IMG/VR virus record: IMGVR_UViG_3300020473_000011
Coordinates: 124,001 to 188,000 of that record
DNA: 64,000 bases
Reading direction: 5' to 3' (one strand)
Positions 7,343 through 61,183 of this stretch are shown here, piece after piece. Within the stretch, counting starts at the first letter, position 1, and every line of letters starts with the position of its first letter. The position numbers and the translations under genes were made by a program. A model generated the notes under the pieces. The model was not told where the DNA came from. It worked only from the letters and a program-made list of their open reading frames with translations, and made no database searches.

Positions 7343-7445
7343 GACGGCCTTATCTTACGCGAATAATTGAAACAGGTGGCCATTTTACAGCGATAAGCAC
7401 ACGGGTAATGGCGCACTGAGAACTAACCGAAAGGACATTGTCATC

Positions 7446-8246
7446 ATGACACAGAAGACCGACACTATACGCATGGTAAAGGTAAACCACCCTGCGAAGA
7501 ACCGAACGTATTACTTGACCGAAGGTAACTACCACTATCTCTTTGCGAGCCGTGGACACCTACCCCAGTCAGACCCTGCTGCGCATGAAAAGACACTGGA
7601 TGCGCAGTCCTCTGTTATCCTTGAAGACGGTGCGCTGTGGCTTAACCGTCTTTGGCCAGCGGCTACCGTCAATGAACTGATGGCGTTGATTGGCGAGCCT
7701 GCCCTGCCAAACGACCAGTCGCTGCCCTATAAGAGCGCCACGTATCAGGGTACCACGTACTTTATCACTGACGCTGTCTGGGATGAGCAAATAGCACCGA
7801 CCTTCGCGCGCCTTGGAAGCTTCCCTGTGGAACGCGCAGCGCTTTATTGTGACTATGCCTACAAAGCAGGGAGCACTGTGAAGTGTACGTATTCATGTGT
7901 CGTCGGGAGCTACCACCAAATCTTGCTACAGCTCAAAGCACTGGCCGAGGTCGTTGACCTTAACGAAGAGCCTGAGCTGGTACACATCGAGCCGTACAAG
8001 GAAACCTATACACTTGATGAGGTGAAGCAGCTACTGGACGAGAACACCGCACTTAAAAAAGATGTTGAGCGCTTAGAGACAAATCAGGTCTGGTACGTCA
8101 ATGCACTAGAAGCACTCTCACCGTTCCGCTATGCAGCCCACCAGCTGCTCACTGAGCCTGAGCGTTTGTCACACCGTGAAGCCCTTCAAAAGGTTCTCGA
8201 TATGGCCGAAGCTTATTTTGCGAAGAAGGATAGCCAGTCTAGCTAA
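7446..8246 (+). CDS. Hypothetical protein
   Basis: 266-aa ORF, AAGGA RBS, C-terminal coiled coil. Confidence 0.75.
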   Translation: MTQKTDTIRMVKVNHPAKNRTYYLTEGNYHYLFASRGHLPQSDPAAHEKTLDAQSSVILEDGALWLNRLWPAATVNELMALIGEPALPNDQSLPYKSATYQGTTYFITDAVWDEQIAPTFARLGSFPVERAALYCDYAYKAGSTVKCTYSCVVGSYHQILLQLKALAEVVDLNEEPELVHIEPYKETYTLDEVKQLLDENTALKKDVERLETNQVWYVNALEALSPFRYAAHQLLTEPERLSHREALQKVLDMAEAYFAKKDSQSS

Positions 8247-8841: not shown

Positions 8842-9522
8842 ATGACCGATAAAACGACCCTAGTAAAGCAACCTGTCATTGACGTCAGGTCGCTTAAACA
8901 CTATAAGTCCGTCACCGTGACGGAGTACCACCCGAAGACCATCACGGCGCAGTACTTCATCGAGAAGCCACTGTATGCTAAACACGTAAAGGCCGAGGTC
9001 TTCTCAGCCCTGTACAGAGGCAAGTCTGTCGCGTCGCTGATGGACTTAATGAGTCGCGTCGCATCCGTGGTGCGCGTGGGCAATAACATTATTAAGTGCC
9101 GTTATGATCTTGGCCACATGCTTGACGTATATCATGAACACAACGAAGCTGAAAACGCATTAGATGCTGCTATCTTTGGCGAAGCACAACTAGATACACA
9201 AACCGACAGCTCAGCTCCAAAGGTTGTGACGAAGTCAGACTATCTTGAAACGCTCTATAACATTACTCAGCGTAAGCATGCCTTCACAAGTATGGCCTAT
9301 GGGAATACCGACATCGACACGCTAACGAACCTGCTTGACTCGCTGCCTGCTCAATCAGAAGGTATGTACTTGATGAGCGACGTGGGTAAGCTCTTAGTGA
9401 GCCTGACGTCTAAGTCGCTGGTGGATGGCGCAGATTATGTGCTTGACTGCCTTATCGCGGAACTTGAAATAAAGGCGGTTAAGCTGCCACCCACTTTCAT
9501 TAAAACGGTAGATGAACTATGA
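8842..9522 (+). CDS. Hypothetical protein
   Basis: 226-aa ORF downstream of the TTGCCC-N16-TATACT promoter (8735-8762). Confidence 0.7.
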   Translation: MTDKTTLVKQPVIDVRSLKHYKSVTVTEYHPKTITAQYFIEKPLYAKHVKAEVFSALYRGKSVASLMDLMSRVASVVRVGNNIIKCRYDLGHMLDVYHEHNEAENALDAAIFGEAQLDTQTDSSAPKVVTKSDYLETLYNITQRKHAFTSMAYGNTDIDTLTNLLDSLPAQSEGMYLMSDVGKLLVSLTSKSLVDGADYVLDCLIAELEIKAVKLPPTFIKTVDEL

Positions 9523-10131: not shown

Positions 10132-10280
10132 TCCAGATAATTACTCTAACCACCTTCCACCAGCCCTTTGCGGGACTATTACCCTGTCCCGCAGACTATT
10201 ACATCTAATAGCTGTTGAAATCGTTGTACAACGCTGCTAGTATGCAATTCATTACTTACTAAGACCGATAAGCGCACACA

Positions 10281-10847
10281 ATGAGCCATGTAGCACTCCC
10301 ACCAGCTAATTATGCTGAACTAGAACAGATGACCGCCACGCCAATTGAAGGTAGCGGCTGGGAAGAGCTGTTCGACTACACAACCTTCGAAGCAAAGATG
10401 TGCTACACAAACGTAGCAAAGGTCATGCTTAATAACCCTGACCGTGAACTACGCTACGTACTGGGCTATATCTGCTCAGGTAACTTAGCAAAGAACATCT
10501 ATATTGCACACGCATGGCTTGAAACGGCTGACGGCACGCTGCTTGACCCAACCTTCGACCTTGTTGAACGTAACCACTTAGACATGGATGATACCCGTTA
10601 CGTCTACTTCCCACGTATTAAGATGACGGAAGCTGAGTTTGATGCGTATTTGGAGAAGATGGAGCTTGAGCGCGGCGCAATGTACGCACCTGATCACAGT
10701 AACATTCAGACATCCCCTGAGCTGGTGGCTAAACTGGCACCGTTTGAAGATTGTGATGGGTTGACCCGTATGATTAACCATGTGGGTCACCACGACCTAG
10801 GCTGGTCTCAAGAAGAGCAGCGCTTCACAAAAGAAAGAGAGGATTAG
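10281..10847 (+). CDS. Transglutaminase/papain-like fold protein
   Basis: CYTN...YVLGY...HAWLE...LLDPT gives a Cys-His-Asp triad; promoter TTGAAA-N17-TAGTAT at 10215-10243. Confidence 0.6.
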   Translation: MSHVALPPANYAELEQMTATPIEGSGWEELFDYTTFEAKMCYTNVAKVMLNNPDRELRYVLGYICSGNLAKNIYIAHAWLETADGTLLDPTFDLVERNHLDMDDTRYVYFPRIKMTEAEFDAYLEKMELERGAMYAPDHSNIQTSPELVAKLAPFEDCDGLTRMINHVGHHDLGWSQEEQRFTKERED

Positions 10848-13001: not shown

Positions 13002-13190
13002 ATGTTTGATTCACTTGTTATGTTCCTAGCTGAGAATGGCTGGAATCTTTGGGGCGCTGTAGGCACTGTTATTGCAGTTGTCGATAAGCTGGTGGCTTTT
13101 TACTTCAAACGAGCTGATAACAAGCTGTGTAAGGAGTGCGAAAAGCCGAAGAAACATTGCCAATGCACACTAGGAGGTGATCAACACTAA
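13002..13190 (+). CDS. 62-aa membrane peptide with C-terminal CxxC-HCxC motif (putative type I toxin)
   Basis: Hydrophobic N-terminal half, CKEC...HCQC; extended -10 TGGTATAAT at 12821-12829 implies a ~170-nt leader; terminator at about 13205-13231. Confidence 0.75.
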   Translation: MFDSLVMFLAENGWNLWGAVGTVIAVVDKLVAFYFKRADNKLCKECEKPKKHCQCTLGGDQH

Positions 13191-13509
13191 CCGATAAACA
13201 CCACAGAGGGTAGTAGCCGCTGCCCTCTTTTTCTTAGTCATATCGACTTTTCGCGTTACCCAGTATAGCCCTTACCTTGTGACTTTTCCACACCGCAGTC
13301 CTGTTGCGTCGCCTGCAATGCACTTTTTGCAAACTTTCTGCACCATTGACCTTCCAATGTACAACAGTTCAGGTAGAATACCCGTGACTAATTTGAGACA
13401 AACCGCTGACACACAAGGTACTTAGACCTTGCTGTAGAGCTGTTTATGAGATATGAGACAAACCGACTATGAAACGATGCTACCCATGTAGCGTGTTAGG
13501 CGTTCCTGC

Positions 13510-17681: not shown

Positions 17682-17726
17682 AGACACTGAGACACTGAGA
17701 CACTGAGACACTGAGACACTGAGACA
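17682..17726 (+). repeat. Tandem repeat (AGACACTG)x5.6 abutting a start codon
   Basis: Read directly from the sequence; the ATG follows at 17727. Confidence 0.95.
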
Positions 17727-18494
17727 ATGACCGATAAAACTGAGACACCGAAAACTGACCATGAACACGTGCTGACGCTTGTACAGAGCCTCTATAACCG
17801 TGCCTACGCTGACAAGCCTGATGCAGTACCTTTTGAGCCGAGTGATACACTAGCGGGTCTCATTGACCAGTTAGACAATATGCTGGTGGGTGTATTGGAT
17901 GAGCGTGAGGAACTTACCAAGGAGAACAAGCAGCTTCGTAAGAACCAGCTAGACCTCTTTGATTCACTCGATACGTCAAGCCATGAGCTAGCTTCATTAA
18001 TAGAGCACGTCAATAACGAACTAAGTAACAATATCAGTAGTGCCGATACAGAACCGCCTGAGTACCTAGATGCTGAAACCCCGTATAAAGCCTACCACTT
18101 GTTAATGGATATTCTGCCGTTTATCTCTACACATGGCGAAGATACGAACCATCTTGTGGAGCGTATGTATACGCGCCGTACAGCTTCTCACGCTAAACTG
18201 CCAACGCCACTACCAATCCATGACCCTGAAATGTATAAGCGCTGCGCAGAGAAGACGAAGCACGCTATCGACGAGTGGAGGCTACGCATTCATGCACATG
18301 ATCAAACTTACCTAGAAACAACATTGAAGTTCCGTGCGCTGGCCAGTACGCAGCTTCACCTGCTGTACCAACAAATGGCCTGCCCACATAACGACACCCG
18401 TGTGACAGAGTACCCTGACGTGCCCGATAAAACGTTCACGTGCGTTAAGTGTCATGCAAGCTACACCGACAGTGGAGCCACTAGCCATGAGTAA
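17727..18494 (+). CDS. Hypothetical protein (coiled coil, C-terminal Zn-ribbon-like)
   Basis: CPH...CVKC near the C-terminus. Confidence 0.7.
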   Translation: MTDKTETPKTDHEHVLTLVQSLYNRAYADKPDAVPFEPSDTLAGLIDQLDNMLVGVLDEREELTKENKQLRKNQLDLFDSLDTSSHELASLIEHVNNELSNNISSADTEPPEYLDAETPYKAYHLLMDILPFISTHGEDTNHLVERMYTRRTASHAKLPTPLPIHDPEMYKRCAEKTKHAIDEWRLRIHAHDQTYLETTLKFRALASTQLHLLYQQMACPHNDTRVTEYPDVPDKTFTCVKCHASYTDSGATSHE

Positions 18495-21870: not shown

Positions 21871-22041
21871 ATGCACATCGTTAGAGCCTTTGAAGAAGCA
21901 ACTAAGAGCCGTGACGCACTTGTCAGCAAGTTAACTAAGTTATCAATGGACGCTGCTGCGGCTGGCAACAAGGAACTACTCGACACATACCAAGAACTTA
22001 TCAAAGATGCGAACGCTATCATTGCGCCGTTCACTGAGTAG
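21871..22041 (+). CDS. 56-aa helical protein
   Basis: Not in the track. MHIVRAFEEATKSRDALVSKLTKLSMD...PFTE with its own promoter, AGGA RBS and a terminator at about 22064-22091. Confidence 0.7.
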   Translation: MHIVRAFEEATKSRDALVSKLTKLSMDAAAAGNKELLDTYQELIKDANAIIAPFTE

Positions 22042-22196
22042 TTAAGGCACCTAATAGCATAGAGAGGCGGGCACAAGTTGCTCGCCTTTTTGGTTTTAGG
22101 CCACCAGCACCTAGGCTTATACTAGGTAACTACTGAATAACCACCCTATTTTCACCTAATCCCCTGTCCCGCAGTTATTTATATCGAATAAAATCG

Positions 22197-22225
22197 TTGT
22201 ACAATGATTTATAAGCTGGTATAGT
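22197..22225 (+). promoter_or_regulatory. Sigma70-like promoter TTGTAC-N17-TATAGT
   Basis: Read directly from the sequence. Confidence 0.75.
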
Positions 22226-22264
22226 GGTCTCAAGTTAAGAATTGAACTACAGAGACCACTAGCA

Positions 22265-22633
22265 ATGATAAACCTTATTCCTACAGCACTAACAGTATTT
22301 GGCCGTGAAGCCGTACAAGCCCGTATCAAAGCAGGTGAGCGTCCTTCGGATATTCAGTTAGACGCGTTTGATCAACGCGATGCTACAATAAAAGCTTTGT
22401 TTGAGGCTATCGAATCTAACTTACCAAAGGGCACTTACTGTTCTGAGGCTGACCACCAACTTACCGTTGATGTCCGTAACGGTGAAGATATGGACGCAGC
22501 GCTGGCTAAGTTGAATGAGCTGGTGGAAACACACGGTCAGTTATTCAAGAAGCGCGGTTGTTCTTTCCAGCTCGTTGAGACCTTTGCTAACGTGACGATG
22601 TTTGAACTTAACTACAATAGAGACCACAGCTAA
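22265..22633 (+). CDS. Hypothetical protein
   Basis: 122-aa ORF downstream of a promoter. Confidence 0.7.
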   Translation: MINLIPTALTVFGREAVQARIKAGERPSDIQLDAFDQRDATIKALFEAIESNLPKGTYCSEADHQLTVDVRNGEDMDAALAKLNELVETHGQLFKKRGCSFQLVETFANVTMFELNYNRDHS

Positions 22634-22911
22634 TGACTGAACTATCAAAAGAACTGAATGACCTAGAAGCCTCAGCAAATGAAAAGGCAGAGGCATTCGC
22701 TACCAGTGAGAAGTGGGCAAAGCTTACTAATGGCCAAAAGAACCTACTTGCTTTGCTGGTGGATGCAGGTCAGTACGCAAACATTGAAGATGCAGCCTAT
22801 CAATTACGAACAAGTGTACAGTGGGTTCATCGCCATGCGTTAGGACTATCAGCGCTGGGACTTGCACGCCGTGAACTATCAAGCGGTCAGATCTGGTTAG
22901 CAGGTGCATAA
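22633..22911 (+). CDS. Winged-HTH-like protein
   Basis: LTNGQKNLLALL...IEDAAYQLRTSVQWVHRHALGLSALGLARR. Confidence 0.6.
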   Translation: MTELSKELNDLEASANEKAEAFATSEKWAKLTNGQKNLLALLVDAGQYANIEDAAYQLRTSVQWVHRHALGLSALGLARRELSSGQIWLAGA

Positions 22912-23352
22912 ATGCGTAAGTTGTTCATAGGCGCAGCACTGGCGTCAGTTTCTTTTCTTGGTTATTACAATGTGACCAACTACCAGTATGCGGAGAATAC
23001 CGAGTATGTCGGTACGGTAGTCAGTAAACCCCAGCCTGTGTGGGCGCGTTCAGATAAGCCTCACTATGGGAAGCACTACCATGTGAGCGTCGACTTTAAC
23101 GGCATCGGTGTGCAATCAGTGAATGTACCTTACAAGCAATATACGCAGCTAAAGACAGGTGATGTCTATCGTGTAAAACCGAAGTACTGGCCAGTCGTAG
23201 GTATCTTTAATTTTGAAGGAACACCGCAGGCCGCTGACAACCCTGCCCTTCACAAGACTAACGTACTCTTAATGCTGACGAGCCTACTCGTTCTAATAAT
23301 GGGTGGATTCTTTGTCGGGATATTAGGGCTGTTCAAGTATCTTGAGGACTAG
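22912..23352 (+). CDS. Membrane protein (two TMs flanking a beta domain)
   Basis: N- and C-terminal hydrophobic segments; Y.QLKTGD. Confidence 0.7.
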   Translation: MRKLFIGAALASVSFLGYYNVTNYQYAENTEYVGTVVSKPQPVWARSDKPHYGKHYHVSVDFNGIGVQSVNVPYKQYTQLKTGDVYRVKPKYWPVVGIFNFEGTPQAADNPALHKTNVLLMLTSLLVLIMGGFFVGILGLFKYLED

Positions 23353-23410
23353 CGTTAAGTTCATGTTGGTTATATACTGGCCAAGCTAATTGAGACTTTG
23401 AGGAACTACT

Positions 23411-23755
23411 ATGAGAACACGTGCAGGCCAACTACTGGCTAATATCAAACCACACCTAACCGAGAAAGCTGGTGGCATTATCGCTGACCTTAAAGCCCTC
23501 GGACTTACTATCAGTGATGAAGACACCCATGGCCGTCAGTGGTTCGAGCTTGATGCTGACCATAGACATAACCCTATTCACGATGTATTCCTAAAGAACG
23601 GCTGGCGCTTGACCTTCAATGGTAATGTGGCTGGTGGTGTTAAGCAGGCTGCTTATCAGCATGACGCGTTCGGCGGGGGCAATGCAGTGCTGCACTTTAA
23701 ACAGAATAAGGTCTACTTCCTGACTGTTAACTTTAAGCGTGATTACCGCGACTAA
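23411..23755 (+). CDS. Hypothetical protein (possible internal head protein)
   Basis: GAGGA RBS; N-terminus MRTRAGQLL...LTE. Confidence 0.7.
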   Translation: MRTRAGQLLANIKPHLTEKAGGIIADLKALGLTISDEDTHGRQWFELDADHRHNPIHDVFLKNGWRLTFNGNVAGGVKQAAYQHDAFGGGNAVLHFKQNKVYFLTVNFKRDYRD

Positions 23756-23770
23756 TCCCTTTGCAGAAAT

Positions 23771-23866
23771 AAAAAACCCGCGAATCACTCAAGGCTGGGA
23801 GCCTAAAGGTCGCGGGCATTAACTAACCGCGTTACTGGCCGACCGATAAACTAGCCAGCAACGAGC
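23771..23866 (-). ncRNA. Putative sRNA 3
   Basis: Minus-strand promoter TTGCAG(23899-23894)-N17-TATCAT(23876-23871); 11-bp 5' hairpin with G-U pairs and loop UUUAUCGGU; terminator CCCGCGA...TCGCGGG-TTTTTT. Confidence 0.65.
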
Positions 23867-24125
23867 ACTCATGATACTTCAACGACTTACCCACTGCAAG
23901 CCCCTACCATACTGTATGCGCAATACTTAAACACGTCCCGTAAGTATGTACTAGCGTACTTGCATACCCTTAGCCTAAAGTCCATAACCCTTTTCGACTC
24001 TTTTGTACTATTTCGTAAATGACAACGCTAGCCTAAACTGTTACAGTACAGGGCATTAGGTTGTGGATTAACGTGGGCTGAATTGTCACACTTGTTCACA
24101 GTACGTGAGTTAAAGGGGAACACTG

Positions 24126-24659
24126 GTGGTTCAAAAGCAGCTTCAAGGGTTTATCGAGAGCTTAGCTGACCAGTACAACTGTGACGAAAAAGTCATAGAG
24201 GTCATTGAAACATTTGCGCAGGAATTAACAGGCCAGCAAGTCGCTGACGTTATCAAGAATCTCGCCGAGCGTGACATCGTCGTGCCTGTCGAAATACAGC
24301 GCCCTGAGTGGCAGCGGCAGGTGCTACTAAACCGACAGGGCGCAGTCATCATCAACAATACAGGGCGAGCTATCGCAAGCAGCGCCGACTTATTTGAAGT
24401 CAAAGACTATGCGCACCTCGTTGGCCTGTGTAACGAACTAGGTTTCGAGCATTCGAGCATCACGAATACGCGAATGCTTGAGAGTGAGGCAACGCGCACA
24501 GAAGCGATTGTCTATGAGCTGACCTTCCGCACGGATGGCTACTACCTACTCCAAGGACATGTGTGGGTTCATAGCAACTTCGCAGACCTAGCTGAAAGAC
24601 TTAGCCAGTTCGACCCTCAAAACAACACACTCTTAACCAAAGACGACGGTACCAGCTAG
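24126..24659 (+). CDS. Hypothetical protein
   Basis: 177-aa ORF with an AAGGGG RBS; last gene before the non-coding repeat region. Confidence 0.7.
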   Translation: MVQKQLQGFIESLADQYNCDEKVIEVIETFAQELTGQQVADVIKNLAERDIVVPVEIQRPEWQRQVLLNRQGAVIINNTGRAIASSADLFEVKDYAHLVGLCNELGFEHSSITNTRMLESEATRTEAIVYELTFRTDGYYLLQGHVWVHSNFADLAERLSQFDPQNNTLLTKDDGTS

Positions 24660-26772
24660 GCGTCACGCCTACTTACTAAACCAAACTTGATACCTCTTAG
24701 ATTTACCTGCGTAGCACAGACGTGCTCGCGCGTGTGTCACGTAATCACGCCCACTACAAAGCAAACCCGATCACACTCGCCTCAATAAAGCTAACTATAC
24801 CCGCATGACCTCGGGTCAGAGTGCTAAGCGAACCGCAATTCGTTGTACAACACTTTCGTTTTTATAGTGGTATATACCCTGCCCTGTCCTCGGGTCAGAG
24901 TATAGAGAAGCTTTCGGGTGCCCTTTACGAACTTCCTACTGCCCCACCGATATTAGATAAACGCCTGTTTAAAGGTCACTATAGTGGTTCTTTGGCTTTC
25001 CGTAAGTGACCCGAGGTCACTTAGCTGTGGTAGTGGACTCGTATAAGCAGGTCTTAGTGAACACTGTACAACGTTTTATCTGTCGGATCGTAAGGCTAGC
25101 ACTCGGCTAGCTGCGCCTTCTCGACACTGCGGTTAACTAAGGGGTGCTTGTAATACATGGGGATGTGACCCAAGGTCAGGCTCAAAGGTCGAGGTGAGGG
25201 TCAACAGTCTCACCCAACTGGCAGCGTTGTACAAGCATTGCCTAAACCCCTGCGCCGCAGTGGGCTAATTTTTCGTACCGACGATGTGAGGGTTGAGGCG
25301 ACCGTACGCCAGAAAAACCTTTAATTTCATACAAACTCTATATGTATACGCCTAGACACACTGCAAAAGTAGGCGTCATGGTGTCGGCTGAACGGTTTAT
25401 TTTGGGTTACACACTGCGGCACAGGGGATTTCGTTGAATCAGAGTGTTAGGCAAAGTGAGCTAATACCTTATGTAGCAGGGGTATAGAGTGGAACCATAA
25501 TGACAACCCCTCGCTTCGCTCGGTTTAATCACGGCTTAGTCGCAGCTTTAATTACTAGTTTCCGTCGGTTCAGTAACGTTTTTGATGGCGGTTAGGGTTG
25601 TGCTGTTACTGATATTAGATGTGCATTGGTGCGTAGTCTGCTACTCATTAGTGGTTCTGCTTGTCGATTAGTGAGTAGAGTGTTACTCATAGTGAGAAGC
25701 TATTTGTGCCTATCTATTTACATTAATGGTTCTAGTATTGCTCTCTTGCTGTCTAGTTGTGGTCTTATAGTTGCGTCAGTTAATGGTGCTGGTTTGCATT
25801 CTCTGGTTTTACTTGGCGTTACTGAGTGTCTACTTTGGTTGCAAATATGATGCACGGTTATCGCATTGCTTGTATTGCTTGAGTGTATGTAGTTATGTAT
25901 AGGGGAAATGCAAACAGGGTTTTACTAACTTTCTAGTGTTGCAGTGATATTCCGCAACTGGGTAGTTGAACCTCAGTATAGGAAAAAGTGCGTGTGACCT
26001 CGGGTCATATTGGGGTGTTTTGTGTCTACTTTTGCGATTCTAGACACTGATTTCGGTCTGACCTCGGGTCATGGGTCACTATTTAGCGGTGTATTGTACA
26101 ATGCTTTGGGGTTGTGCCCTCGGGTCAGATAACCTTTAACTATATAGGTTTCTTGCCGAATCTCGGTATAACCGCACTGGCGGCGGCAGGTTAATAACAG
26201 TAGCGATGCCGCTTGTTAGTTCATAGTGTGACGTGGAATGTTTATAGTGAGCTTTATATGTGGTCGTACATTAATAGTAACGTGTATGTATACGTATATA
26301 GAATGAATAGTAGAATGTCTGGAATAGCTTATAGTAATAGGCTTGTATGTATCTATAGAATGTAATGTATATGTGCATACTAATATTATGTATGTGTACA
26401 TGTGTAATATAGTAGATGTAGTTATAGTGTCTATAGTGAGCATAGTGTTGTTCATAGTATTTATGTTCTTACTGAGGCAATGAGTTATCGACTATCCTGT
26501 GCGGGCGCGCAAGTGTTCTTTCTTTTTAGTGGAAGGTGGCTGCTTTCTTGTGTTGGCCTGCCCTCGGGTCAGGGTGCTTGTGGGTGTTCTTTTCGTTGTA
26601 CAATGGATTTTGACTGTCCTGTGCGGGGCGCTGCGGGCTTTTCTCGTATGAAGATGAGTGCTTGTGTGGGTTTTACTTTTTAGATGGCTTGTGGGGCGTC
26701 TGAGGGCGTTTTTACGTTTTTGAGGGGGTGTGGCGACTATCCTGTGCGGCCGCCAAGCGGAAGTAGAGGCGC

Positions 26773-27150
26773 TTAACGCGTCTCTACTGAGTTATTTTCT
26801 TGTTCTTTACTATCTATCTCTTCGAGCAGCGCCTCAAGGTAAGATAGGCGGAACGCAGCGCGTATGTCGTCCATCTTGAAGTCTAGCGCGCATAACTTGG
26901 TGAACAACTCGCGATGCTCGGTTACGAACTCACGTGTTAGCTCAATCGTATTTGAAATCATAGAAAGCACATACCCATCTACTAGTTCTAGATTGTCACC
27001 GATGTGCGTCATTAACTCGGCTTTCTTACCTGTGTTATGTAACGTGGCAATTTCAGTCATAAGTTTCCAGCGCGCTTCGCGTTGCTCTTCTGTTAGTTCC
27101 TGATTAGGCACTGTTATCGTATCGGTCGTCATAGTGTGGTTAGTCTCCAT
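26773..27150 (-). CDS. Hypothetical protein
   Basis: 125-aa ORF, last gene of the minus-strand operon. Confidence 0.65.
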   Translation of the reverse strand: METNHTMTTDTITVPNQELTEEQREARWKLMTEIATLHNTGKKAELMTHIGDNLELVDGYVLSMISNTIELTREFVTEHRELFTKLCALDFKMDDIRAAFRLSYLEALLEEIDSKEQENNSVETR

Positions 27151-28869: not shown

Positions 28870-29253
28870 TTAACAAAACCAAGCAGGGGCGTACGCGTTT
28901 TCCCAGACAATTGCTGAGTTAGTTTCGCCCGCCACATCAACAGCAATCTCAAAGGCGTCAACACCCTCAAGCTCGTCAGTCTGGTCACTGAAACCAAAGT
29001 CGTCGGCGCTGCCTTCGAATGACACTTCGTAAAGCTCTTCTTCGTCGTGCATTTCAGTGATGATCACCTTACCTGTCGAAAGGTCTTCGAAAGTACCCAC
29101 TGGGAACTTAACTGTTGAGCACTCAGCCCAACCATCGTTTAAAACGGCACGGTACGTCTTACCTGCATGCTGTTCAGCGTAAGTAGCATCCCATACACGG
29201 GTTAAGGCTTCTTTGTCACTGGTTACCTTGATGTGGGTAATTGTTTTGTACAT
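28870..29253 (-). CDS. Hypothetical protein (paralog of 28351..28842)
   Basis: Start placed at MYKTIT because the TTGTAC-N17-TATAGT promoter lies at 29316-29288. Confidence 0.7.
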   Translation of the reverse strand: MYKTITHIKVTSDKEALTRVWDATYAEQHAGKTYRAVLNDGWAECSTVKFPVGTFEDLSTGKVIITEMHDEEELYEVSFEGSADDFGFSDQTDELEGVDAFEIAVDVAGETNSAIVWENAYAPAWFC

Positions 29254-29433
29254 AGTGTCGGTCTCATTTATATCGGTTAATGAGGCCACTATAGCAGCTT
29301 GATAATCGTTGTACAACGTTTTTATTTGGTTTAATTCCACTGTGGGGCAGGGGTTTTCGTGACTGTCCTGTGCGGGGCGCAGTAGGGCTGAATGTCAATG
29401 GTGCAGGCTGTCTGACCCGCACTCATTTTTTAT

Positions 29434-33808: not shown

Positions 33809-34213
33809 TTAACGTACCATCAGGGCAATGCCTGCGGCTGCGAGTAGCCCGCCAATGATAAAGAAGCCATCGGCCATCCGTCGTATGACCTTTCGATAGT
33901 TGTATTGTAAGTACAAGCGCTCTTGATGTATGCCACCGCCTTCTTCGCCGTGGATATGGAATCGTATAGACTTACCGCGTTCAATGAGTTTTTCTAGGTG
34001 GTCGTCGTCCATAAAGCGTATGTACATGACGGATTCGCGCTCGGTGAAAGGTATGGTTTCCCAATCCAGTCTGTCCCACAAGTGTGAGTGTGGTAATAAG
34101 TGGTTTGTTCTGTCAATGCCATGTGGCGGGTGTATATAGTCGACTTGCAGGTCATCGACCATTTGTGGTGTTGGAAAGCGTCTGTAATACGCCAGTATTA
34201 TTCTTTTGAACAT
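33809..34213 (-). CDS. Hypothetical membrane-anchored protein
   Basis: C-terminal TM segment. Confidence 0.6.
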   Translation of the reverse strand: MFKRIILAYYRRFPTPQMVDDLQVDYIHPPHGIDRTNHLLPHSHLWDRLDWETIPFTERESVMYIRFMDDDHLEKLIERGKSIRFHIHGEEGGGIHQERLYLQYNYRKVIRRMADGFFIIGGLLAAAGIALMVR

Positions 34214-34415
34214 AGCGATGTCTTATCGGTTTTTCTAAGTACGGGTAAAAAGAGTGATTGTACAACCAATTTGGGCAAATGGTATTAAACCAACCAGTTG
34301 TACAATCACTTAAATAAGATGAGCGCCACCCTTGTTTATCCAGTAGGGAACAAACAATGGTTTGGTTCTGGTTGGGAACTATGTCTCATCTTATCCCTAA
34401 GTATCTCTCGGTGTC

Positions 34416-35834: not shown

Positions 35835-36713
35835 ATGACACACGCAATGAACCCCGAAAATTTGGGGTTGTTAAAGAAGACCCTCGATTCGCTGCCCGAT
35901 GGCGTGCTGGTCGTTTCTCCTGACCGAAAAATTGTTTATGCGAATGACCGATTTATCGCTATGTGGGGGATCCCAAGCACCGTCATGGGGACTCATGACG
36001 ACAGCAAGATACTTGATTATGTTGAGGCGCAGGTCACTGACCTTGAGACTTTCCGAAAGCAGGTAGAGGATTTATACGAGACACGCCGCGAAACAGAAGA
36101 TGAGATCCATCTTACTGATGGCCGTGTTTTTCTCCGCCGAGGGACGTACCACGTTAATGCTGAGGGTGAGACCGCCCACATTTGGGTGTTCTCCGATATA
36201 ACCAGCCTAAAAGCATTTGAGCGCTGTTCGCTTACTGGCGTATTTAACCGCCGTAAGTTCGATGAAGAGTTCGGCTTGCGCCTGCTTGGCATGACAGACA
36301 AGGATATTATTGGCGTAGCGCTACTAGACCTTGATAACTTCAAGCAGTACAACGACAGCTATGGCCACCAGCAAGGCGACCGCTTACTTTCAGAGGTTGG
36401 ACGCTTGTTCCTTGGACGCCTACGTCGTAGAGGCGACACAGCTTATCGTATTGGGGGAGAAGAGTTCCTACTAGTCTGTAAGTGCCGCACTGAGCAACAC
36501 CTGTTTGATTTCATTGATTCAATACGCGCTGATGTTCAGCGCCTTGGCCGTGAGCATGAGAAGAACGCACCTTATAATGTCGTGACCTTTTCGGCAGGCG
36601 TTGGTTTCATACAGGGCAGCGCGAAGGCTGACTACGTGTTTGCCCAAGTAGATAAGGCGCTCTACGCGGCAAAAGAAAAAGGCCGCAACCAACTCGTAAG
36701 GGCTAAGATTTAG
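35835..36713 (+). CDS. PAS-GGDEF diguanylate cyclase
   Basis: PAS domain (LDSLPDGVLVV...YANDRF..MWG), LTGVFNRR, DLDNFKQYNDSYGHQQGD, RxxD I-site (RRGD) and GGEEF active site. Confidence 0.95.
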   Translation: MTHAMNPENLGLLKKTLDSLPDGVLVVSPDRKIVYANDRFIAMWGIPSTVMGTHDDSKILDYVEAQVTDLETFRKQVEDLYETRRETEDEIHLTDGRVFLRRGTYHVNAEGETAHIWVFSDITSLKAFERCSLTGVFNRRKFDEEFGLRLLGMTDKDIIGVALLDLDNFKQYNDSYGHQQGDRLLSEVGRLFLGRLRRRGDTAYRIGGEEFLLVCKCRTEQHLFDFIDSIRADVQRLGREHEKNAPYNVVTFSAGVGFIQGSAKADYVFAQVDKALYAAKEKGRNQLVRAKI

Positions 36714-37790: not shown

Positions 37791-38228
37791 TTAATCTTCT
37801 GTTGATGCGCAGTATATAATAGATAGCTTGCGGGTGTCAGGCTCGATACCGTGCATGCCGAAATTACGCGAGGCATCACCCGAGTTATCGTAAACATCCT
37901 CAACAGGAAACGTTTCTTTTAGTTGGTCAACATGAACGCAAATCGAACCTAGTTCCATCATGGCAGTTAGGATTGATTCTTGCTGGCCTGCTTCAAGAGC
38001 GCGGGCAAAAGTTCGGTAGTTTCTTTCGTCGGCGGTGCTTTTTGCAGCCTTGTTTATCTCGTTGCCTAGGATTGACTCAACAGCAACATCGTTACCACAG
38101 CCATTGTCTAGCGCGCTCGATAGTGATTCGGTGGCTTCAACCAGTGCGAGGGCAAGTGTCATCGGGTCTTGCTCTGCTAGTAACTTAATAGCGCGGGCTT
38201 TCTTGTCTTCAAATGTTTGACCTAACAT
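37791..38228 (-). CDS. Hypothetical protein
   Basis: 145 aa, AAGGA RBS. Confidence 0.7.
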   Translation of the reverse strand: MLGQTFEDKKARAIKLLAEQDPMTLALALVEATESLSSALDNGCGNDVAVESILGNEINKAAKSTADERNYRTFARALEAGQQESILTAMMELGSICVHVDQLKETFPVEDVYDNSGDASRNFGMHGIEPDTRKLSIIYCASTED

Positions 38229-38257
38229 AGTTAGTGTCCTTATCGGTTAGTTAATTT

Positions 38258-53917: not shown

Positions 53918-54550
53918 CTATTTGTACAAGATGTAGATCCCATACAAGTTTCTTTTCGTGCTGCCTGCCACTGCACCTGCATTGACAGGAAGGGTTAGTC
54001 TAAGCTGTATCTTTGAGAACCCATCGGATGCGCGTATTTCTGTGTCAGCATCAATGCTGTACCACGTATCTTCATCGTTAATGCGGACTTCGATAACCAT
54101 GTCTTCGTAGTTAGGGATGGTCGACACCCAAAAACGTCTAGGCATTCTATCTTTATAGTATCGGCTAGATACTGCTAAGCGTCGTGTGACTAGCTTTGCT
54201 AGCCCGTTGGACGTATCAAACTCTGCATTATAGGGTTCGAGTGTACAATTCTCTGAGCTTTCCATATCGATCAGTTGCAGCTCGTCAAACTTTATGAGTT
54301 CCAGTAACGGCAAACCCGACACGAGCGAAACGTAGGTCGAGTAGCTGTACACCAGATAAGGTACCAATAGTAGATCACGGTCGCGCATTGCTTTTTTCAG
54401 CAAGGCTTCGTCCACCATTGGGATCCCGTTAAAACGCAAAGTATTGTTCGCGTCGGAGTCCAGACTATCAAGCACGCGTTGGTTCGGATGACGATGGTCA
54501 CGGCTACCCGTTTTAGACGGTATAACAACGGTTTTTCTGCTTACAGTCAT
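53918..54550 (-). CDS. Putative structural protein
   Basis: HRHPNQRVLDSL motif; C-terminus similar to that of 54719..55585. Confidence 0.65.
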   Translation of the reverse strand: MTVSRKTVVIPSKTGSRDHRHPNQRVLDSLDSDANNTLRFNGIPMVDEALLKKAMRDRDLLLVPYLVYSYSTYVSLVSGLPLLELIKFDELQLIDMESSENCTLEPYNAEFDTSNGLAKLVTRRLAVSSRYYKDRMPRRFWVSTIPNYEDMVIEVRINDEDTWYSIDADTEIRASDGFSKIQLRLTLPVNAGAVAGSTKRNLYGIYILYK

Positions 54551-59968: not shown

Positions 59969-61183
59969 CTAGATGACCACTGTTCTTAATTTACGTACCC
60001 TTGGTAAATCACGTGCGGTGCCTTCAAGCTCCAACTTAACGCGGATGGTGTCACCCGATACGTCATCAAGCTTATAAGTACGTTCGATAAACCCGTCTTC
60101 TAGCGACACGCTGCCAGCCAGTGGCAACTCTTTCCACTCGCTGCCGATTGCATAGAATGCTTTGACCTTTGAGGTAATACCTGTACGAGACTCAAAGCTA
60201 ACGCGTACGTCAGCATTATCGCCTAATGGGATGTGCTTCGTTACGTAGTCGCCTGTCTCAACAACACCAGCACTTACAAGCGTTAAGCCCGTTAGAACCG
60301 TCGGTGATTTACTTGAAGTACCTGTCAGCTCTAATTTAGCCTCGGCTTTACCCGTGATCTTAGTAGGCAGTGATGTGATAGAGTCCTCTTTCAAGCGGTA
60401 CTGAGTACGGCCGTCAGGCATCATCAGTACGATAGCTGCGTCGGTCTCTTCATCAACACGGTCAGCGTTGAACTGCGCGTGGATAAGGTCAGCGTTATAC
60501 AAGTCGAAGGTACCTAATGAGTAACTACGCTTATTTGTGCTGTAAACAGCTTCGTGCAGGGTGAAACGCATATCAGTCTTCTGGTGTGGCGTCCATGTTG
60601 ACGCGTTAGAAGATGATAAGAGTGTCCCAATCTGGAAAGCTTGTGCCTTAATCCACTTGTCGTTACGTTGGTCGTACTCGCCAAGTGTCGCCACCTCTAC
60701 TTCCCAATGTGCGTCGTCGGCCATCAAGATGAAACAGTACTCAACACCGCGCTGTAAGCGGATAGGATCAAACGCAATACGTGTGTGCTTGTTGTTATCA
60801 ACGTTAGTAACTTCATCAAGTTCCACACGCTGACGTCTAAGGATCGTCTGCGTCGGTATACCGTTCTCACACGTACGGATGTCGAGGGTCATTGGCGTAT
60901 CGCCTTTCACCTTAACCCATACGTCAACAGCGGCTAGATCCACATCACGGTCAAACGTGAACGTTTGCGCTAGTGGGTCGTAACGCTGGTACGTTACCAG
61001 CGTGTTTGTCACGATGTTCTGCACCTCAGAGATCTGAGCGGTACCCTGACCCGTGAAAGAGGTTAGGGCAGTCGTGCCCATATCACCGTCTACACGTACT
61101 TCGTGTGTACCAGCCTTTTGATTAGCTGGGATTTTGAAGGAACCACGGATGGCTCCTTTTTCATCTGCAATAAATTCTGCCAT
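59969..61183 (-). CDS. C-terminal half of a second DUF4815-like protein
   Basis: DPLAQTF and GTLLSSSNASTWTPHQKTDMRF align with the C-terminus of 56113..59871. Confidence 0.85.
   Translation of the reverse strand: MAEFIADEKGAIRGSFKIPANQKAGTHEVRVDGDMGTTALTSFTGQGTAQISEVQNIVTNTLVTYQRYDPLAQTFTFDRDVDLAAVDVWVKVKGDTPMTLDIRTCENGIPTQTILRRQRVELDEVTNVDNNKHTRIAFDPIRLQRGVEYCFILMADDAHWEVEVATLGEYDQRNDKWIKAQAFQIGTLLSSSNASTWTPHQKTDMRFTLHEAVYSTNKRSYSLGTFDLYNADLIHAQFNADRVDEETDAAIVLMMPDGRTQYRLKEDSITSLPTKITGKAEAKLELTGTSSKSPTVLTGLTLVSAGVVETGDYVTKHIPLGDNADVRVSFESRTGITSKVKAFYAIGSEWKELPLAGSVSLEDGFIERTYKLDDVSGDTIRVKLELEGTARDLPRVRKLRTVVI

Follow-up and report, generated by a model that had tools for sequence, protein, structure and literature searches.

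A marine jumbo phage of roughly 420 kb appears to encode a small RNA (sRNA) of ~93 nt whose two unpaired segments are antisense to a short tag at the 5' ends or start codons of about 30–40 of its own early genes, so that, as inferred from sequence, one RNA may control a whole gene class. The candidate locus lies on the minus strand of the window, by which we mean the whole 64,000-nt stretch analyzed (bases 124001–188000 of the 281.5-kb IMG/VR record IMGVR_UViG_3300020473_000011, 47.7% G+C). The protein encoded next to the locus (gene 23411-23755) also occurs on contigs of up to 419,624 bp, so the source is a jumbo phage of about 420 kb found in marine metagenomes. No near relative was found among curated phage genomes by megablast, nor in IMG/VR using the neighbouring protein, a structural protein and an exact hairpin word as queries. 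Virion-type DUF4815 proteins are located at 56–64 kb of the window.

The original prediction described a minus-strand promoter, an 11-bp hairpin, a loop antisense to a word recurring at start codons, and a terminator, and every one of these elements proved to be present, so its observation is confirmed. The predicted RNA folds at -40.9 kcal/mol (z = -3.5 against dinucleotide shuffles), and the hairpin includes 2 G.U pairs that would be A.C mismatches on the plus strand. The sigma-70-like promoter matches only 8 of 12 consensus positions, below the threshold of the promoter scan, and its support comes instead from conservation in relatives. The loop-complementary word ACCGATAA occurs 14 times in the window, compared with 1.57 expected, and 36 times in the 281.5-kb record, compared with 9 for the reversed word. 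All the predicted target sites exist, at 8845, 17730, 10264, 34223, 38240 and 13190, together with near matches before 29253 (ATTAACCGATAT) and 11740 (AACCGATAC). The positional test proposed with the prediction gave 8 of 36 copies within ±25 nt of a predicted start in sense orientation, against 1.29 expected (p = 3e-5), although six of the window's 14 copies lie inside genes and this residual excess may reflect codon usage.

To investigate whether the locus is an RNA gene, and on which strand, we searched for homologues of gene 23411-23755 and found them at 76–77% protein identity on four short marine contigs, designated L009/L010 and L011/L012, whose downstream intergenic regions align with the window. 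The terminator hairpin, the loop core UUUAUCGGUC and the linker core CGGUUAG are invariant, whereas the promoter spacer and the flanks diverge and the stem of hairpin 1 is almost completely rewritten: the window has CGUUGCUGGCU/GGCCAGUAACG, L009 has GCGGUUGGGA/UUUCAACCGC, and L011 has GCUAUCGAGA/UUUCGGUAGC. Because the three stems were out of register in the MAFFT alignment, pairs were counted directly from the sequences. All 31 stem positions pair on the minus strand across the three lineages, and 8 of 10 positions differ between lineages. Six of the pairs are G.U pairs that would be A.C mismatches on the plus strand, and no pair favours the plus strand. The three lineages fold in the same way, with minus-strand MFE values of -38.5, -37.8 and -37.8 kcal/mol (z = -3.7 to -4.3), compared with -29.9, -31.3 and -24.0 kcal/mol for the plus strand, a difference of 6.5–13.8 kcal/mol. 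A conserved small ORF within the RNA was rejected, since the ATG overlapping the -10 box opens different frames in L009 and is absent in L011. Rfam returned no match at gathering thresholds over the whole window, nor at E <= 10 over 23700–23950. Together, this is good comparative evidence for a structured, independently promoted, minus-strand non-coding RNA, although it rests on only three lineages, without a formal statistical test of covariation.

More distant relatives added little. Homologues of gene 23411-23755 at 41–54% identity (contigs L158–L161) have no sRNA-like element beside them, and L158 (54% identity) shares only the TTGTACAA boxes described below. A homology search with the downstream gene 24126-24659 retrieved only itself. 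A pattern scan for CTAACCG-N9-14-GACCGATAAA gave only chance hits in IMG/VR and, among the metagenome contigs retrieved, added only an identical copy; a stricter pattern in genome contigs gave nothing.

We next examined the context of ACCGATAA. The genome contains 149 copies of the palindrome TTGTACAA, 99 of them intergenic, which mark a family of sigma-70-like early promoters. In one class the palindrome supplies the -35 box (TTGTAC, a 17-nt spacer, then TATAGT), and in the other it lies in the spacer between TTGCAA and TATACT. Aligning the sites revealed that ACCGATAA is not a free-standing start-codon site, as originally proposed, but the 3' half of a 12–16 nt leader tag, (ATTA)ACTAACCGATAA, with the longer word reading ACTAACCGAT(A/T)(A/C) and often preceded by ATTA. 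Of 43 matches with at most two mismatches, 26 are intergenic, against 2–8 for control words. Among 25 start-proximal copies, 11 (44%) begin 4–9 nt after a TAnnnT box (background 11%), and 60% have a TTGTACAA box within 75 nt (background 17%). In about half the cases the tag begins 6–8 nt after the -10 box of the TTGTACAA-type promoters, and it is therefore usually the first dozen bases of an early mRNA, as judged from predicted rather than mapped transcription starts. It peaks 30 to 18 nt before the ATG, just upstream of the position where the RBS-like word GAGAC peaks. The tag is optional: only about 7 of 17 TTGTAC-N17-TAnnnT promoters carry it at +1. Shorter versions occur elsewhere in the initiation region, including copies just after the ATG and GAGACCGATATG-type fusions with GAGAC at several genes, a behaviour that fits an RNA-level tag better than a promoter element.

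To link the RNA to the tag, we slid every 7- and 8-mer of a 108-nt segment (window 23872–23765) along the genome and counted its complement at -60..+20 of 403 predicted genes. Only two stretches stood out, and these are exactly the two unpaired parts of the fold. Positions 23–26 lie in the loop, with ACCGATA giving 23 observed against 4.4 expected and GACCGATA giving 7 against 1.0. Positions 44–48 lie in the single-stranded linker, which the original prediction had missed and which is the stronger seed, matching more leaders than the loop does: ACTAACCG gave 16 observed against 1.3 expected, AACTAACC 14 against 1.0, and TAACTAAC 10 against 1.1. Of the 22 genome copies of ACTAACCG, 16 lie in these start regions (1.26 expected, p = 7e-16), all in sense orientation and none in antisense. 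Three leaders match the linker over 12 nt (ATTAACTAACCG, at window 38255 and at genome positions 89774 and 47743). In total, 39 of 403 genes carry a perfect complement of at least 8 nt to one seed, against 7.7 expected, and 32 of the 39 lie in the first 165 kb, outside the structural module. This locus is the only place in the genome where the seed sits in a hairpin loop, and in L009 and L011 the core AUCGGU occurs twice, once in the loop (UUUAUCGGUC) and once in the linker (AUCGGUUAG). In contrast to the exact-seed counts, whole-molecule duplex energies (RNAduplex) barely separated start regions from random windows, about 2-fold for the loop and not at all for the linker, and were too noisy to discriminate targets. 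Likewise, the total number of matches of at least 9 nt between the RNA and the genome was not above shuffles (173 against 98–185), and only their location is informative. PHROGs and Pfam searches of ten genes in the window, most of them tag-bearing, assigned no function except a weak GNAT hit and a HipA-like kinase.

The tag is retained upstream of diverged orthologues. Orthologues of the best target, gene 37791-38228, at only 57% protein identity (contigs L152, L154 and L156) keep AAAATTAAACTAACCGATAAGG at the same distance from the ATG, while the sequence further upstream is unrelated. A 59% orthologue on contig L150 has the shortened ATTAACCGATGAAGGA, and L150 has ATTAACCGATGAAGG as an example of a change in the tag. 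On the same contig, the orthologue of 33809-34213 keeps ACCGATAAGA at the same distance, although the DNA between it and the TTGTACAA box has changed. The tag is therefore under selection. The features of the locus and its predicted targets are listed in Table 1.

Table 1. Coordinates of the candidate sRNA locus and of tag-bearing sites in the window.
Position	Strand	Feature	Details
23894..23899	-	-35 box TTGCAG of the candidate sRNA promoter	TTGCAG in L011 and TTGTGT in L009 at the same place, preceded by a conserved GGGG (GGGG-N-box)
23871..23876	-	-10 box TATCAT, 17 nt after the -35 box	TATCAT in L009, TACTAT in L011; all fit TAnnnT; predicted RNA start near 23862-23866
23830..23863	-	Hairpin 1	11-bp stem closing a 12-nt loop
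23841..23852	-	Seed 1, the loop AGUUUAUCGGUC	Antisense to (G)ACCGATAAA(CT)
23818..23829	-	Seed 2, the single-stranded 12-nt linker CGGUUAGUUAAU	Antisense to ATTAACTAACCG; unpaired in the MFE and centroid folds
23771..23817	-	Intrinsic terminator, a compound GC-rich hairpin followed by U6	GCCCGCGA...UCGCGGG plus U6 (UCGCGGG plus U6 at 23771-23782); shared back-to-back with the end of plus-strand gene 23411-23755; T-run only on the minus strand in this phage, whereas relatives also have GTTTTC on the plus strand; inner helix has U.G pairs on the minus strand
38240..38255	-	Best target leader, ATTAACTAACCGATAA followed by GGA	About 27 nt before the ATG of gene 37791-38228; 12-nt perfect complement to seed 2 and 8-nt complement to seed 1
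34223..34230	-	ACCGATAA	10-17 nt before the ATG at 34213 (ORF 33809-34213)
10263..10271	+	GACCGATAA	18 nt before the ATG of gene 10281-10847, downstream of a TTGTACAA box at 10224
8844..8853	+	GACCGATAAA	Covers the G of the ATG and codons 2-4 of gene 8842-9522; 10-nt complement to the loop
17729..17738	+	GACCGATAAA	Covers the G of the ATG and codons 2-4 of gene 17727-18494
7422..7433	+	ACTAACCGAAAG leader (seed 2 target)	24 nt before the ATG of gene 7446-8246
29270..29281	-	ATTAACCGATAT	Begins 6 nt after a TATAGT -10 box and 28 nt before the ATG of gene 28870-29253
13186..13197	+	ACTAACCGATAA	Overlaps the stop codon of the 62-aa ORF 13002-13190 and is followed by a terminator-like hairpin
24019..24047	+	Divergent promoter (ATGACA, 17 nt, TACAGT) for gene 24126-24659	Bounds the sRNA locus on the other side; both boxes conserved in relatives

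Evidence for expression was thin. Among three marine metatranscriptomes (X25, X18 and X19), the only assembled piece of X25 across the 5.5 kb examined is a 207-nt contig at 23677–23883 that covers the locus, but it is unstranded, has a depth of 3.9, and extends 94 nt beyond the terminator and about 19 nt beyond the predicted start. In X18 and X19, neighbouring genes reach depths of 25–119, yet there is essentially no depth and no assembled contig over 23824–24007. A contig starting at 24056, 9 nt after the conserved plus-strand -10 box at 24042–24047, shows that such contigs can follow transcript ends, while short RNAs are commonly lost from such libraries. In a run of a relative (X3), 22843–24734 differs from the window at only one base (23890, in the promoter spacer) and so adds no covariation.

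The most likely reading, to which we assign a probability of about 0.55, is that the locus is an independent minus-strand gene for a non-coding RNA, running from about 23864 down to 23771, whose loop and AU-rich linker are two seeds that pair in trans with a tag the phage places on a subset of its early mRNAs. In this view the tag, ACUAACCGAUAA, sits at or near the 5' end of the transcript, whereas shorter variants, GACCGAUA(AA), overlap the ribosome-binding region or the start codon itself; about 30–40 of roughly 400 genes carry a match, nearly all in the early-gene half of the genome. Sites covering the AUG or the RBS-like word should block initiation, and those at the extreme 5' end, 20–30 nt before the AUG, could block 30S loading, create an RNase III substrate, or instead protect the 5' end. 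The most likely outcome would be reduced translation or stability of these mRNAs as the RNA accumulates, that is, an early-gene shut-off. Our analysis demonstrates the structure with its covariation, the strand, the invariance of both seeds, and the positional enrichment, orientation and evolutionary retention of the tag; that the RNA is made as a discrete species, that pairing takes place in the cell and regulates the targets, and that the effect is negative are inferred. The original interpretation, a trans-acting phage sRNA silencing a set of early genes and comparable in spirit to P1 C4 antisense RNA, is thus supported in part: the structured minus-strand RNA and the enrichment of its loop complement at gene starts are supported, silencing is an inference, and the comparison with C4 holds only as an analogy.

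An alternative that we consider unlikely, but retain, is that the structured minus-strand RNA is real but does not silence. It might protect or activate tag-bearing mRNAs, for example by masking the 5' end from RNase E or pyrophosphohydrolase, might guide RNase III processing, or might have another main role, such as titrating a host RNA or protein, with the leader matches secondary. The evidence for structure, strand and seeds serves this reading equally well. Many tags lie 20–30 nt before the AUG, at the edge of the ribosome footprint, so repression is not the only possible outcome, and most seed-2 sites are at the very 5' end of the transcript, 20–35 nt before the AUG and not on the RBS, where pairing can stabilise an mRNA, as with the 5'-UTR-binding sRNAs of RydC-cfa and SgrS-yigL. 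However, the loop-seed sites that cover the start codon or the RBS-like GAGAC (8844, 17729, 35828) are classic repressive positions.

Slightly less likely still is a DNA-level signal, in which the tag would be part of a phage-specific promoter or initiator, or an operator for a DNA-binding regulator at +1..+12. The two copies inside 23771–23899 would then be further protein sites or a fossil of an inverted terminator-plus-leader cassette, and the hairpins would serve only as the terminator region of gene 23411-23755. The strict orientation of the tag, its intergenic position about 25–30 nt before starts, its frequent spacing from a TAnnnT box and the weak RNA evidence are compatible with this reading, and the plus strand of the locus resembles other cassettes of a hairpin followed by (A)TTAACTAACCG, for example at genome positions 89770 and 162251. 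Yet DNA sites do not explain stem covariation with six minus-strand-specific G.U pairs or the coincidence of both seeds with the unpaired parts of the minus-strand fold. The same promoter class also works without the tag, copies inside ORFs right after the ATG (+2 of ORFs 8842 and 17727) cannot be promoters for those genes, and no -10 box lies between the terminator and the plus-strand copy at the locus. The tag does not behave as an obligatory element at a fixed distance from every predicted start of one promoter class. A chance resemblance, an ordinary terminator region containing a common word, is very unlikely. ACCGATAA is only the 65th most frequent 8-mer and is not exceptional given its own 7-mers (36 observed against 26.6 expected), but the invariant seeds, the covarying stems, the confinement of enrichment to the two unpaired segments and p-values of 3e-5 to 7e-16 argue against it.

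Among known systems, the P1/P7 C4 antisense RNA and P4 CI RNA are phage-encoded immunity RNAs of about 80–100 nt in which two short unpaired segments, a loop and a single strand, are antisense to short sequences repeated in the phage's own mRNA leaders and act in trans. The candidate shares the two unpaired anti-leader segments but is not a member of this family, as the covariance model gave no match. C4 and CI are cut out of the transcript they control (by RNase P / PNPase) and have one or two target sites in one operon, whereas this RNA appears to have its own promoter, with conserved -35 and -10 boxes, and about 30–40 dispersed targets; its locus is convergent to one gene and divergent from the next, not inside a target operon. 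In architecture it resembles Hfq-type multi-target sRNAs such as GcvB, RybB and Qrr, with a length of about 90–100 nt, a conserved unpaired seed maintained while the remaining stem drifts by compensatory changes, an AU-rich single strand (GGUUAGUUAAU) preceding a Rho-independent terminator with a U tail, a layout also present in L009 and L011, and seed complements in or near the initiation regions of many genes. The closest parallel is GcvB binding to CA-rich enhancers upstream of the RBS, although here the RNA is phage-encoded and would be aimed at the phage's own early transcripts through a phage-specific tag at their 5' ends. Staphylococcal RsaE and RNAIII-type sRNAs, which have duplicated C-rich seeds, also present a short seed core twice, in a hairpin loop and in a single-stranded stretch, and address a recurrent mRNA motif, but they target the Shine-Dalgarno sequence itself, whereas here the motif is a separate tag and only some copies overlap the RBS or the start codon. 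In logic the system resembles the T4 RegB endoribonuclease and RegA translational repressor, proteins for which a short motif shared by the initiation regions of many early mRNAs lets one phage factor turn the class off; here the candidate regulator is an RNA. RegB is discussed in PMC9409239. Finally, PAK_P3 sRNA1/sRNA2 and the T4 band C and D RNAs are abundant RNAs of about 100 nt seen by RNA-seq from intergenic regions of lytic phages, proposed to act by pairing, for which only single 11-nt matches in the phage genome were found and no function is known (PMC4933390). The present candidate has a whole class of conserved, positionally constrained target sites, but its expression is only predicted.

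Trans-acting sRNAs are established in bacteria and prophages, whereas for large virulent-type phages only a few abundant small RNAs have been seen, none with an assigned regulon (PMC4933390). A self-directed, multi-target sRNA in a jumbo phage would differ from these in having a regulon that can be read from the sequence, as a conserved address tag on early leaders and a conserved RNA with two matching seeds. More tentatively, a giant lytic phage may run part of its temporal programme through RNA, tagging about a tenth of its genes, all early ORFans, with a 12-nt address at the 5' end of the mRNA that one two-seeded sRNA reads to switch the whole class off or on; this would be an RNA counterpart of T4 RegA/RegB and a rare regulon of its type in a virulent or jumbo phage. 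The model of RNA-based class control of phage genes is directly testable, and the compact tag-and-sRNA pair could be reused as an orthogonal switch. It would also show that short words recurring near start codons in uncultured phage genomes can be the visible half of an sRNA network.

We next examined sequence words that recur throughout the record. The palindrome TTGTACAA occurs 149 times, with 99 copies located in intergenic regions, and marks two sigma-70-like promoter classes. In one class it supplies the −35 box (AAAATCG-TTGTACAA-TGATTT-N9-TATAGT), whereas in the other it sits in the spacer between TTGCAA and TATACT, in the manner of an operator. A palindrome-binding regulator is likely. 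The box is shared by more distant relatives, represented by the contigs L009, L150 and L158. In addition, mini-hairpins of the form CTGC-NNN-GCAG, often followed by a T-run, recur between genes, positioned either before the promoter or between the TTGTACAA box and the −10 box. These resemble short terminators that insulate single-gene cassettes.

Genome-wide, the most enriched word before start codons was (A/T)TTGAGAC(T/A), with the core GAGAC. TGAGAC occurs 78 times, compared to 10.9 expected, and peaks at positions −20 to −1, while the classical AGGAG is rare. This word could represent an unusual ribosome-binding signal or, alternatively, a late-promoter or processing motif. At one of these sites, the unit ACTGAGAC is tandemly repeated.

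Coordinates of the sequence features and genes described in the text (positions refer to the window unless stated otherwise; strand given where reported)
Feature	Coordinates	Strand
TTGTACAA palindrome (examples; whole record)	20774, 21804, 22197, 29309	
GAGAC-type word, 1–20 nt before start codons (examples; genome-wide)	17690-17726; 53918-54550 and 59969-61183 upstream regions	
Tandemly repeated unit ACTGAGAC	17690-17726	
ORF-poor region between convergent gene blocks	24660-26770	
Metatranscriptome contigs containing parts of the ORF-poor region	24944-25134; 26611-26920	
CTGC-NNN-GCAG mini-hairpins (examples)	genome 102200-102240; window 25244-25262	
HipA-like ORF	930-2249	-
62-aa ORF with tag copy at its 3' end	13002-13197	
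Tract differing from run X3 at 22 positions	21971-22842	
Tract differing from run X3 at one position	22843-24734	
Gene with apparent L150 orthologue	35835-36713	+
Apparent orthologue carrying PAS and GGDEF domains	L150 3259-4140	

An intergenic stretch of about 2.1 kb, lying between convergent gene blocks, contains no ORF longer than 79 aa. It holds at least seven copies of the palindrome TGACCTCGGGTCA, three copies of CGACTATCCTGTGCGG spaced 122–123 nt apart, and four TTGTACAA boxes, and parts of it appear in metatranscriptome contigs. This region could be a cluster of non-coding RNAs or a replication origin. Comparison with the sequencing run X3 revealed a related strain that differs from the window at 22 positions across one tract but at only one position across the next 1.9 kb, which includes the candidate sRNA locus and both flanking genes, suggesting a recent recombination tract or strong constraint.

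The leader tag proposed to pair with the candidate sRNA was also found in a different context: a 62-aa ORF ends inside a perfect ACTAACCGATAA and is followed by a terminator-like hairpin, placing a tag copy at the 3' end of a gene with no start codon nearby. Pfam analysis of a further ORF identified HipA N- and C-terminal domains (E = 5e-48 and 5e-18, respectively), indicating a HipA-like kinase (toxin-type) gene in a phage early region. Finally, the L150 gene that appears to be the orthologue of a window gene (293 aa versus 292 aa) carries PAS and GGDEF domains and is therefore a phage diguanylate cyclase candidate. Both genes have ACCGAT directly before the start codon, making them predicted targets of the loop seed of the candidate sRNA.
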